A stretch of DNA of 64,000 nt from Phallusia mammillata (Eukaryota): the NCBI GenBank assembly GCA_965637545.1, contig OZ281498.1, positions 20,212,001 to 20,276,000 on the forward strand. Direction: 5' to 3'. A program made the translations under genes and the position numbers. Below are positions 49,389-59,352 of this stretch, in pieces. The notes beneath the pieces are model-generated. The model did no database searches. It saw only the letters and a program-made list of their open reading frames with translations, and was not told where the DNA came from. How positions within the stretch are numbered: the stretch's first letter is position 1; every line of letters begins with the position of its first letter.

Positions 49389-49530
49389 TTGAGTTACGAT
49401 TGCTGCTGTGTTCAATTTTCATATAGCAAACCACTGGTGATTTTTTTTTATTAATGTCATTGGTCATTATTTTTTACACTAAGTAGAAGGGTAATAATAG
49501 GAAATGTTATTTGTATCATCTAAAGTGGTT

Positions 49531-52500
49531 TCAATCACATCTGATCTTCATTGTTGATCCTTTGATCGCATTATCAGCTTTCCAGTGAGACCAGATCATG
49601 TTTTGCCAATTGCCTGTTGATCTTCCCCAATTACCGTTAAGTTTAGAATCAAAACAACTTGTAAACCACCACCCGCTTTCCCACATAAGTGCACAGTTGC
49701 TTGCACTTCTGTGTCACAACGTTTCAGTAAAATATCGATAAACAAGCGAAAACAAATTTAAATTAAGATGTGTTTTACGCTTGAGCGCAAATCCATTTTA
49801 GTTAGTATTTTGATTTATGTCATGTTATTTGGCACTATTTTCTTTCCATATTTCACATACATTTTTTATCTAAGCTTATTTGTATTGCGCCGAAAAATAA
49901 ATTTTCGAGGAAAAGGATCGTTTAACTTTTGGTCATTGTGGTAAAGTTATCGTACTTACGTATCATGATCCTGATCTTGAGTAGAAAATTGCATCCCGTT
50001 GTGTCCTTTCAGACTGTCACCAGCCGTTCCGCTGTATCCAGAAACATGTAAACGGTAATTGTCTGATTCGCCGTCGATTGCAAACGAACTTGAAAAAAAA
50101 TTCTTACTTATGTGAATCGTTTTTTACTAATTAATTAGGATAGAAGCATCATGGTTTTAAAAGATATTTAAACTAAAATACCACATAATAAATTTAGGTA
50201 CCAACTCGTACGCTAAAAACTGGAACTGACTTCCGGAGTTTCCATAAACAAAGAACGCACTTGTTCTTTGATCGCCAATGAAAGTTTACATTTATTTATT
50301 CTTATTTACTTTGAGGTTAACATAGGCCAGGGGTGTCCAATTCGAAAGCACCGCCGTGCCAATCTAGGTTTTAAAATATACTCGCGTGCCAACGTTTGGT
50401 AGGCCTACTTTTTTCAAGCCATGTCTTAAACGTCTTACCGGTAGAAAAAAATATGTTGTCAAACGCGAGTAATGAGTAAACTTGTTTATGATACTCCAGA
50501 AACCTTTTATAACATACCATGTCGCTTAAAGCGCAGAATCCATAATATGGAATATAATACGACAGCATAAAGGCCCGGAATTATCCAAAATTCGACAGTT
50601 TCAAACGCCTAAAAGTATACGGATCAAGTCTAAAAACGACTAATTTATTTAGTGGATTTGTGTAACCTTGATACTGATCATCTTTACTGAAGTTAGAAAG
50701 GCCAAAAAGAATCAATAGAAAAATATTAATTACGTGACAAATCCTGATGTTTAGCATCTGAATGTCCAAAAATTGCGTGCCATTTTCAAATGCTCTGCGT
50801 TCCACTTTTGGCACGCATGCCACGTGTTGGACACCCCTGACATAGGCTATGTCTTATATGAGATGTGTCGAAACGTTACGTTGTTTTACAATTAACTTTA
50901 TTTTTGTTTTCAAATTACTGATGTAAAGAAATTGGTTTATATCATATAACATTTAGTGGCGCCATAAACGCCAGATTAATTTCTAAGCTTGGTGCACAGA
51001 TTAAGCTGCACAAGATTAGTCTTATGTTTTGTGTCATAATTAGGGCAATTATTTTTTGACCTAAAAAACGAAAAAAATTGACCTACAAATTGAAAATTTT
51101 GACTTTAAAAAACTTTTTTTTTTGACAAAATTTTGACCTATGAAAAAGTAGTTAAATTACACATTATTGTACAAAAAGTTAAAATATGGCTGTACGCTAC
51201 TCTGTAGACCAAATTTTTAACAGAAGGGCAAAACTCTGAACACAGACCTAGTCTGTTCTGAAAAGGGAAATGAGCTAAGTAAAAATCACTGCCAAAAAAC
51301 TGCAGCTAAGACACAACGAAAATTATTCAATACAGTTGTCTAAACGAAAGATACATGAAATACCAAAAGCAAAACCGAAGCAAGAGCTGCACCTAACCTG
51401 CAGCTGCCGTAAAATGACTTGGGACCTACCAAAATTTTGCACGTTTTGAGATGTGTTGAGCATCACGCCATATCAACCTAATTATTTCACTCACTTTATG
51501 GTTTATGATTCACAATGAGTAGGCAATGGGCCAATTACAACAGTATAAAGTAGGCTACAAGGTGTAAAATGGACAGTTCACTGAGAGTGCAACCTCTACA
51601 ACACCACGACAATGTTTGTAAACAATTTTAACTTTGTAAAAAATTATGACTTTGTGAACAATTTTGACTTTTTTTTGTCAAGTCAAAAAATATTTGCCCT
51701 AGTCATAATATATATCAGGGGTCACCAAACTTTTTTCACCGCGGGCCGGATAAGTTTAATAATAATTTGCGCGGGCCGGACAGTTTACATGCCCCAGCGC
51801 CGTCTTTTCGAACTTAGCTCGCAAGGCGATTTTGATAGGGGAGCCAAGATATGGTCTTTCTGTACTCCCATTAAAAATCTGGTGAAAAAAACGACTATTA
51901 AATTGTATAGTTAGTCTCATCTTACAAGCAATGCTTGTATATTACGTCATAAGTGACCCAAGAAAGCAATGGTTTGCGCACAATTGACACTTGTAGTCTT
52001 GTTTGTGACGTAACAATCTGGCTTTGGGTCAAACCTGGGCGTTATAATCCCACAAAACAAGGTAATATTAATTCTACATATCGCGACAGGAAAACTTTCG
52101 TAAGAAGTAGATTATTTTTTAAATGTTACAAAGTTATCAATGCGATTTGACAACCTAAAAAATGTGGTCGCGGGCCGGATGAAATGACCTCGCGGGCCGT
52201 AGTTTGGTGACCCCTGATATATATTGTGATGTTTGTGGTACCTGATTGTTCGCATTGTTTGCACACAATAGGCGTACAAAACGTTGGACGCGACTATTAG
52301 GCTGTTAATACTCTTTTTCGTACCACAAAAACTGTTTAGAGCAGTTTAAACATGAAAACATTTAGCAAAGGACTTTTAATGATGTCACAGCCGGCAGTAC
52401 ATATATTTTAATAAACATGTTCACGGCAGAGTCAGAATCTTTAAAACCGTGAATTATGTTTTTATTTACTCTCAGCTTTAATAAAATGGAACACTTAGTC

Positions 52501-56638: not shown

Positions 56639-59352
56639 TTAATCACATCTGATCTTCATTGTTGACTCTTTAATCGCTTCATCCCACCCTTTCCAGGTTT
56701 TCCAGATCATGTTGTGCAGATGACCTTCTGATCTTCCCCATTCTGAGTTGAGTTTAGAAGTGAAACAACTTTTAAACCACCACCCGCCAGAATTTCCCCA
56801 TTCAAGTACGCAGTTGCGTGACTGTCTGTGCAGTAACATTTCAGTAAATATCACACTGTTGTATAATAACACTCAAACATTGATTTGATCTTGAGAAAGT
56901 TAAATGTATTTTACCAGTTGTCTCGAATCCATTAAAATAATTTACATACTGAGTTTATATCATTTTTTGGAACGACGTTCACTTTCCACATATATTGCAC
57001 TTTTTTTACTTAGGCAAGTATGGAGCAACAAGAGAGATTTTTGATGAGAAAAAAAATTTCATGTTTTTTTAAAGCAGTCGCCAAAAACTTTTTGAAAAGG
57101 CATTATAATTTACGATACTCACTCATCATGGTCCTGGTCTTGAGTGGAGAATTGCATCCCGTTGTGCGTCGTAATAAGACTATCACCAGCCGTTCCACTG
57201 TACCAGAAACTTGTAAACGATAATTGTCTGATTCGTCGTCGATTGCAAACGAACTGCGAAAACAGTTTTTTGACAAATGAAAAATCGTTTGACAAATAAG
57301 GGAAGAAGTAACATGATTAATAAAATATTCTGAAAATATTATGAGACAATATTAAATTAGACACAAACTCCTAGTCACGTTTCGTTTTCCGGGTATAGGC
57401 CCCACGTTAAAATTGGGACCAAATTGCGGAAATTCCTTAACATTAACCCACTTGTACTCTGATCGCAAATAAATCTTTTCATTTATTTACTCTTATTTGT
57501 TTGATGATGACATATATCTCATACATTATGATAAGATGTGTCGAAAGGTTTTGTTTTTAACAAGGCTTGTCTGTTCATTGTCAGAATCTTTAAAGTCGTA
57601 AAATGTGTCCCGTATATACCCTCAACTTTATTTAAATGAAAAACAATCTACACACTAAAATAGCTTGACCAGTGCGATGTCTTAATGTGTTTCGTTGTCG
57701 TGAAGAGGATGCTTTAAGCACGTGTGACAATGATTCTTATCAAAGGCGTTATTTCGCCCATTTCCTACTAATAGAACAATGGCAACTGCACGAAGCGATT
57801 TAAGAAAAACTGACAACTAACAATTTGATGTAATTATTTGTTGTTCAACATTGTTTTTTTAGCTGAATAAGCGACCACCTCATTATATACTATAACATTT
57901 GTAACTCCACGCTAACTTTATTTACATTTTTTTCTTGGTCAGAAAACAGTTATGCTAAAATAGTCAGCGACCTAAAAGGATTAGGTTGATAAATCTGTTA
58001 GTTTCAGTACTTCACACTTAGTATATACCGTTTTTGAACCAATATTTGGCATGTGGTTCCGTGTTCGTTATCTTGGTAATAAAACCCAATATCATCACCA
58101 TATACTTACGTGTATTGTGCGTAAGCTGTAGAGTCATCAAATCCTCTCAAGTCAATTCTCAACCTGCAATTCCGTCCGCTAGTCATCGTGTGTATTTTGT
58201 CCAAACCTGATTTAGTTAAAAATTTAGCTTGATTACTATAGGCAACTTTACGCGCCTACAAGCTATGCACCACAGTTGTTTACCTAGCCAAAATTCGCCA
58301 CTCATGTTTCCGAATCCATCTTTATATTCCTGCCAGTTTCTGCTAAAATTCACACTTCCGTCAAATCGTTTTTGAAAAACCTGTAGAAAAAATAAGACTA
58401 TTTCCATAACGTTTATTTGTTAATTGTCAACCCTTCGTTTACTGTCCAGCCGCCTTCGAGGACTGCTCCTTCGTCGTTACTAATCAGCCCGTGGTTTCCG
58501 TTCACTGATGACTCAGAGCGATTGTTAAATAGTGTGCTCTCGATCACTGGAAAGTAAAAATACAATTAAATTGAAATACGACCACAAAACAATTGTTCAA
58601 ACTGTTAGATTGTGGCGGAAAACATTTATCTTATTGGAGCGTTTTCAACTTTGGGCTTAAGTTTATATAAAACGGGCTTGATTCTGGCCTGACTCACTTA
58701 TGGTCATATTCGTATCGTATTTCCACGTTGATGAATATAAGTTTTTTGAGCGTGCTTATTACTGTGGTTGAAATAGTCAAATATCAAAATTAAGAAAGTG
58801 GTTGACTATTGAAACAAGTTTTCCAGCGAATAGTTGATCGAAATAAATCATACTAAATCAATGCGTGTAAGTTTTACAACAAGCCTAAAACGAGCGAAGC
58901 TTACAGTGTTGACGAAACTGTGGGCCTCAAGGTTTTTGCAAAACCTAAAGGTTGAGAAACACTGGGTATGACAAACCGAAATCGCTCATTTAAAAACTAA
59001 CGACAGGCAAAACTTTTTATTTGCGTTTGCAAATAGTTTAATCTTAAACCTTCAAACGTGTGAAACATTTACCTTCAAGTCTTTCTCTCATTTCCTGTTT
59101 AAATTCTTCCAAGTCCGACGCTTCTCCTTTTTGCCCAACAGCCCCCTTATCACCTTTCATTCCGGGTAATCCCCTTGGGCCCATTTTTCCGGGGGGCCCA
59201 GCGTCCCCCTTTTGGCCCCTCCCACTTACCAAGCTTCCGGGTGTGAGAGTGACGTCATCACCACACACTGGAACAGTGACGTAACTGCATTGCTGCTGCC
59301 CGCCGACCAGTGACGTATAATACAACACAATCGCAGTAAATTGCAACAACAT
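56639..59352 (-). CDS. Ficolin-like collagen-FReD gene (6 exons) with a -1 frameshift in exon 5 (possible pseudogene or null allele)
   Basis: Exons 59352-59073 (signal, CSYVTVPVC, 11 Gly-X-Y triplets GQK...GEA, short neck), 58546-58443, 58380-58284 ([12 protein letters not shown]...GEFWL), 58206-58110, 57253-57123, 56825-56639 (GGWWFKSC...MKIRCD). Sum 896 nt, one base short of a multiple of 3. Confidence 0.85.

Follow-up and report, generated by a model that had tools for sequence, protein, structure and literature searches.

Classical exon shuffling in extracellular proteins is the exchange of modules that are bounded by phase 1 introns on both sides (Patthy's rule). Fibrinogen-related domains (FReDs) are one class of recognition module found in such proteins, and in the FREPs of molluscs the FReD is combined with immunoglobulin superfamily (IgSF) domains. 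Expansions of FReD genes have been described in other invertebrates, including insects and oyster (PMC1242226, PMC4346834), and domain shuffling has been described in the immune genes of amphioxus (PMC4284660). Among ascidians, ficolins are recorded for Halocynthia roretzi (Kenjo et al. 2001, in the form in which PMC5465252 cites that work). In this report, we analyse a stretch of 64,000 nucleotides (nt) of the Phallusia mammillata genome (contig OZ281498.1, positions 20,212,001 to 20,276,000; hereafter the window), in which two neighbouring genes on the minus strand, gene A and gene B, carry the same FReD cassette beneath two different N-termini. We propose, with a probability of about 0.78, that gene A is a chimera produced by illegitimate (non-homologous) recombination or by segmental duplication within a large ascidian lectin family.

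The locus resembles each of the described systems in part and departs from each of them in part. Gene B shares with the ascidian ficolins and collagen-FReD proteins (Halocynthia roretzi, Phallusia P0008, Ciona P0017, Clavelina P0011, P0018) a signal, a Cys-rich start, a short collagen stalk, a neck and a C-terminal FReD, but it is frameshifted on this haplotype. Gene A shares the LCCL-LCCL-EGF-FReD order with two P. mammillata proteins annotated as 'Ficolin-2-like', P0001 and P0002 (A0A6F9DDK6 and A0A6F9DDD3), whose own linker matches a relic exon in an intron of gene A, but the working linker and FReD of gene A belong to another subtype. As in classical phase 1-1 shuffling, the exchanged modules are phase-1-bounded and the new junction lies in an intron and is repaired by splicing; in contrast to the classical case, one breakpoint falls inside an exon and has left a readable stub, and a FReD has taken the place of a FReD, so that no new domain combination has been formed. 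As in the mollusc FREPs and the other invertebrate FReD expansions, we see a large multigene family, decayed in part, in which a conserved FReD head is combined with N-terminal partners of various kinds, but the partners in Phallusia are LCCL/EGF, collagen and Sushi, and there is no evidence of somatic diversification.

One cassette beneath two N-termini

Gene A (49531..55323, minus strand) was rebuilt as 11 exons, at 55323-55242, 54996-54841, 54774-54652, 54591-54439, 54238-54149 and 53625-53509 (exons 1-6) and at 53001-52913, 52850-52754, 52674-52578, 50088-49960 and 49708-49531 (exons 7-11); every intron is GT-AG, and the clean, intact open reading frame of 436 amino acids encodes a signal, two LCCL domains, an EGF domain, a linker of the gene B type and a FReD. 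Pfam finds LCCL twice, EGF and Fibrinogen_C in this protein, the last covering profile positions 40-219 of 221, with a score of 193 bits against PF00147. The order of signal, two LCCL, EGF and FReD is the one that typifies the P0001/P0002 family (Pfam on gene A and P0001), and that family's own KLPC-type linker and FReD subtype are lacking from gene A, which retains only a truncated relic of the linker. Gene B (56639..59352, minus strand) has six exons (59352-59073, 58546-58443, 58380-58284, 58206-58110, 57253-57123 and 56825-56639), again with GT-AG introns throughout, for a signal, a Cys-rich start, 11 Gly-X-Y triplets, a neck and a FReD. By tblastn, genes A and B are the only two FReD genes in the window. 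Each of exons 1-6 of gene A, like exon 1 of gene B, ends in phase 1, the phase in which the linker exon of either gene begins.

By blastn and MAFFT, the interval 58996-56429 of gene B lines up, at 74-92% nucleotide identity, with the interval 53265-49381 of gene A, both on the minus strand, in collinear order across five exons with their introns and across the 3' untranslated region (UTR). The copy in gene B (56429..58996) extends from 77 nt inside intron 1 to beyond the poly(A) signal, and the copy in gene A (49381..53265) accordingly opens with B-type intron 1 sequence ahead of the five exons. Identity between the two copies is 77-92% in exons and 60-82% in the intron and flank alignments (Jukes-Cantor K 0.2-0.57); a single high-scoring segment pair of 688 nt leads from the linker exon through an intron, an exon, a second intron and a further exon into the next intron, and the 3' UTRs can be aligned through the poly(A) signal. 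The noncoding homology has the sharp boundaries of a segmental duplication, and the end of the EGF exon and the start of the linker are both in phase 1. A preliminary description of this DNA had recognised a duplicated five-exon FReD cassette with two different N-termini, breakpoints at about 53260 and 58990, and N-terminal modules that all end in phase 1, and our measurements bear it out on all three points.

Miniature inverted-repeat transposable elements (MITEs) were considered as a source of the similarity between the introns, an objection that the preliminary description had itself raised, and were ruled out: the homology is collinear through the exons, and the intron block upstream of the linker exon (53265-53128 in gene A, 58996-58862 in gene B) has no further copy in the window and lies at single-copy depth in DNA contigs, and is thus not a mobile element. 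The comparison with contigs covers one 6-kb stretch, exon 1 of gene B and the last four exons of gene A lying outside it, and RNA enters it as contigs only.

Elements of this kind do account for a difference in length between the two copies. Intron 9 of gene A measures 2489 nt, as against 856 nt for the matching intron of gene B, because it holds three MITE-like insertions with terminal inverted repeats (50318-50849, 51025-51717 and 51703-52229, without assigned strand; inverted-pair search), and the homology with gene B has a gap between 52431 and 50324 at these insertions. Since the three elements are absent from gene B, they were inserted after the duplication. Another MITE-like element, with 17-nt terminal inverted repeats and likewise without assigned strand (49020..49383), abuts the 3' end of the homology in gene A; homology with gene B was looked for beyond this element, and none resumes. 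Two of the four MITE-like elements in the region of gene A have similar ends, CAGGGGTGTCCAA and CAGGGGTCACCAAACT.

The protein encoded by gene A is a mosaic. Its best protein matches are P0001 and P0002, to which residues 1-240 are 87-88% identical (over 238 residues); the N-terminal parts of P0001 and P0002 are 89% identical to one another, so gene A is about as distant from each of them as they are from one another. Its FReD, in contrast, is only 47-50% identical to those of P0001 and P0002, as against 64% to the Phallusia collagen-FReD protein P0008, 69% to the Phallusia Sushi-FReD protein P0026 and 78% to gene B, and it is not nearer to P0001 and P0002 than the FReD of gene B is. Maximum-likelihood analysis of the FReDs places A and B as sisters (98/97) beside P0008 and P0026 (79/88), and P0001 and P0002 form a separate long-branch clade. 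The sister relationship, on which the idea of a duplicated cassette had been made to depend, holds among the sampled FReDs, dozens of genomic paralogues being outside that sample.

The 5' breakpoint and the history of gene A

A tblastn search of the window with linker residues 238-256 of P0001/P0002 gave a match at 53326-53270, inside the EGF-to-linker intron of gene A. At this position, a 53-nt stub (53270..53322, minus strand) stands behind an AG acceptor (53324-53323), continues in phase 1 from the EGF exon, and reads 18 residues followed by IFF and a stop, with no donor site. The stub has an alignment score of 61; shuffled introns gave a mean of 23.5 (standard deviation 3.3) and a maximum of 40, and 0 of 2000 reached 61. 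Its end lies at most 5 nt from the start of the homology with gene B, and, judged from P0001 and P0002, it appears to be cut about eight codons short of the expected end. We regard it as the relic of the linker exon that gene A used before the swap.

The relic linker and the fall in identity between the N-terminal part and the FReD together indicate that the LCCL-EGF part of gene A came from a gene that already had a FReD of its own. The event is thus a replacement of a FReD by a FReD, in which the subtype and the linker were changed and the LCCL-LCCL-EGF-FReD architecture was pre-existing. The combination of collagen with this type of FReD is the older arrangement, because exon 1 and the FReD of gene B resemble the collagen-FReD proteins of Phallusia, Ciona and Clavelina; exon 1 shares 63% identity with P0008 and 37-43% with the proteins of Ciona and Clavelina. 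On this comparison only gene A appears to be derived. The preliminary description had proposed that two lectins arose by the swapping of upstream modules, and it was right about the kind of process, exon shuffling; it erred in treating both genes as products of the swap and in overlooking that one FReD was exchanged for another.

We propose the following course of events for the chimera. A member of the LCCL-LCCL-EGF-FReD family would have supplied the 5' part, that is, the promoter, the signal exon, four LCCL exons and the EGF exon, together with the first 53 nt, about two thirds, of that family's own linker exon. The 3' part would be a copy of about 2.6 kb of a B-type collagen-stalked FReD gene, one that begins 77 nt inside intron 1 and takes in everything from the linker exon, by way of four FReD exons, to the 3' UTR. 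The phase-1 EGF exon would then be spliced to the incoming phase-1 linker, the truncated old linker being skipped and the frame kept, and the product would be secreted, in frame and again of the LCCL-LCCL-EGF-FReD type, now with another subtype of FReD. Neither the collagen stalk nor that half of the neck which exon 1 of gene B encodes would have come along in the swap. The protein of gene A probably does not oligomerise in the manner of a ficolin. Both A and B proteins may be secreted lectins that recognise carbohydrates or acetyl groups. Afterwards, both copies would have evolved under purifying selection, MITEs would have entered intron 9 of gene A, and gene B would recently have lost one base.

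The junction itself bears on the mechanism. If two old FReD genes lay side by side, ordinary gene conversion could have equalised their 3' halves with no exchange of modules at all, and the two genes are indeed tandem neighbours in a multigene family and share a continuous tract of about 2.6 kb. Such a history is nevertheless very improbable: the 5' junction leads from the interior of an exon of gene A to the interior of a B-type intron with no homology from which conversion could have started, the old linker exon was truncated and not converted, and FReDs of the P0001 type and of the B type, at about 50% protein identity, are too distant to be converted across introns. An exon-to-intron junction without homology points instead to illegitimate recombination or to a segmental duplication that landed there.

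The direction of the movement is less settled, and there is a substantial minority chance that it ran the opposite way, with a tandem duplication of gene B followed by the copying of part of an LCCL-EGF-FReD gene into the second copy. The insert, from the promoter to two thirds of the linker exon, would then stand where the collagen exon and the opening 76 nt of the intron had been. This order of events gains from the arrangement of the cassettes, which lie head to tail and 1.1 kb apart, and from a tblastn search near gene A that found no relic of a P0001-type FReD, including downstream of the gene. It is countered by the 3.2 kb specific to gene A (56428-53266), in which blastn found neither the upstream region of gene B nor a trace of the collagen exon; this interval matches nothing else in the window. 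Both movements give the same final product, and the data of the window cannot separate them. We favour the arrival of a B-type 3' part beneath an LCCL-LCCL-EGF gene.

Several points weigh against this account of gene A. A tree that unites A with P0001 and P0002 is not rejected by an approximately unbiased (AU) test (p = 0.33), because the long P0001/P0002 branch can attach almost anywhere. The direction of the event can therefore not be read from the protein tree by itself, and we base it on the relic exon and the identity pattern, A being no closer to P0001 and P0002 than B is. The true 3' breakpoint may be hidden by the MITE-like element at 49020-49383. The real donor may have been a B-type gene other than the neighbouring gene B, since dozens of paralogues lie outside the sample. 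In addition, the RNA contigs that fall on the N-terminal exons of gene A differ from them by 7-9% and probably derive from paralogues (or divergent alleles), those on its EGF and linker exons are at least 7% different or of low depth, and none of them was shown to bridge the 53509|53001 junction of gene A.

The proposed chimera is not a very young gene. Over 194 codons, nonsynonymous (dN) and synonymous (dS) divergence between A and B is 0.13 and 0.42 by NG86 and 0.13 and 0.34 by maximum likelihood; dN/dS is about 0.31 overall (0.13/0.42) and 0.6 in the terminal exon, from which the binding pocket is built. The terminal branch of gene B is shorter than that of gene A (0.11 versus 0.27), which suggests that gene B was constrained until recently and that its frameshift is recent. 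A dS of about 0.4 and three later MITE insertions show that the swap was not 'caught in the act', as had been claimed; the divergence of the introns points the same way, and the exchange of heads is not a very recent event.

Gene B and its frameshift

Exon 1 of gene B encodes 11 unbroken Gly-X-Y triplets, read directly from the translation, and its Pfam Collagen match (E = 1.3e-5) reaches 25.3 bits, under the curated cutoff of 27.2. Of the ficolin hallmarks, gene B has the signal with a collagen-like stalk and the C-terminal FReD, but it lacks an intact frame. The collagen region in exon 1 (59352-59073) contains P-G-K-M-G-P; in P0008 the place of the Lys is taken by Asn, and in Ciona P0017 by Arg. 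This sequence resembles the MASP-binding motif of MBL and ficolins, Hyp-Gly-Lys-Xaa-Gly-Pro, and we offer it as a lead only.

The frame is broken by a deletion of 1 nt in exon 5 (57202..57203, minus strand), where gene A reads GGATAC and gene B GGTAC: a GGA Gly codon is one base short at 57202, and 3 nt are inserted further on. Exon 5 thus measures 131 nt in gene B and 129 nt in gene A, and the identical phases attributed earlier to the shared exons do not extend to this one. As assembled, the frame of gene B breaks at 57202, where tblastn changes frame, and reaches a stop in exon 6; with X placed at the break, the gene is otherwise open over 298 residues. The lost base is a lone A outside any homopolymer. 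DNA contigs without the base have a depth of about 140 at 57202 in each of the data sets X1 and X2, so that the deletion is probably present in the reads, although X1 and X2 are possibly the same data as were used for the assembly. The deletion looks real on this haplotype.

The chance that gene B is an intact and functioning ficolin-type gene, its frameshift being an assembly error or a rare null allele, falls somewhat short of even. Gene B is open save for the frameshift, its dN/dS is far under 1 and its branch is short. Further contigs, of DNA and of RNA, have an additional base at 57202 (T, C or G, each of which restores the Gly codon), and two of these extra-base DNA contigs in X1 are at about the depth of one haplotype (93.9 and 95.6). 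One RNA-type contig of X3 (record 21) has the missing base, matches exon 5 at 119/119 positions and is spliced to exon 6; against this, it has 12/159 mismatches to exon 6 of gene B and may come from a paralogue, and the depth without the extra base in both X1 and X2 and the loss of a lone A speak for a genuine deletion. An RNA-type contig of X4 (record 29) covers the linker exon of gene B (58441-58548) with one mismatch and extends past both ends of the exon. An intact allele of gene B, or a very close paralogue, is transcribed.

Only one-haplotype depth is seen in DNA contigs over the introns of gene B (56900-58900), whereas parts of gene A (53100-53900) show two haplotypes, at depths of 110 + 93 in X1 and 305 + 304 in X2. 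Gene B may be hemizygous, or its other haplotype may be more than 10% different.

The phases of the exons had also suggested hybrid transcripts, in which read-through and cross-gene splicing would join the collagen exon of gene B to acceptors of gene A and give collagen-LCCL or collagen-FReD(A) proteins. The donor at 59072 and the acceptors at 54996, 54591, 53625 and 53001 had been placed correctly, and these, like the acceptors at 54774 and 54238, are all in phase 1. The compatibility is right as arithmetic, which is all that speaks for such hybrids. They are exceedingly unlikely. Gene B has its own poly(A) signal, and the RNA contigs contain no cross-gene joint, a weak look given that only contigs were available and that exon 1 of gene B lies outside the 6-kb stretch.

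The lectin family and its exchangeable heads

Genes A and B belong to a much larger family. In the DNA contigs, the depth of exon bins exceeds that of intron bins 10-40 times, which indicates that the genome holds, at other places, dozens of LCCL, EGF and FReD exons that are similar at 90% or more. The 54841|54774 splice of the family of gene A is visible in RNA contigs, and the variants in the RNA contigs move residues of gene A toward those of P0001 and P0002, which fits P0001 and P0002 as paralogues within the same species. Among 5.8 billion proteins searched, only P0001 and P0002 have the A-type N-terminal module, and the literature yielded nothing specific on proteins that combine LCCL with a FReD, or on the FReD lectins of Phallusia.

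The match of the FReD to the Pfam profile starts at about profile position 40 in both gene A (53001-52913) and gene B (58546-58443), the usual N-terminal segment being absent. The FReDs of Phallusia P0008, P0001 and P0026 start likewise, and the short N-terminus is thus a family trait, at least in Phallusia, and no defect of A or B.

Two further features of the locus concern its noncoding DNA. Between genes A and B, 55596-55709 is a very high-copy repeat with a contig depth of about 257,000 in X1, as against about 115 for single-copy DNA; many rearranged joints map there, and the repeat is present in RNA-type runs too. DNA contigs with roughly the depth of one haplotype lack two pieces, of 126 nt and 353 nt, of the intron that leads from the last LCCL exon of gene A to its EGF exon (53633-54147); either the other haplotype differs in intron length there, or the contigs come from a close paralogue.

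The exchange seen in gene A may have had counterparts elsewhere in the genome. Although we consider it unlikely, LCCL-LCCL-EGF modules and FReD cassettes might have recombined repeatedly at several loci, as a standing, phase-1-based germline diversification of secreted recognition proteins; if so, the collagen-, Sushi- and LCCL-linked forms would share one pool of heads.

The locus is a neat example of a known process, exon shuffling, in a little-studied family, and it introduces no new principle. With both breakpoints mapped, and the 5' one inside an exon and still readable, the history of a domain exchange is legible in the DNA of a chordate immune-type lectin family. Ficolin-type genes and the unusual LCCL-EGF-FReD proteins of Phallusia can trade recognition heads, which is relevant to the ways in which new specificities are gained, and oligomerising stalks lost, in such families.

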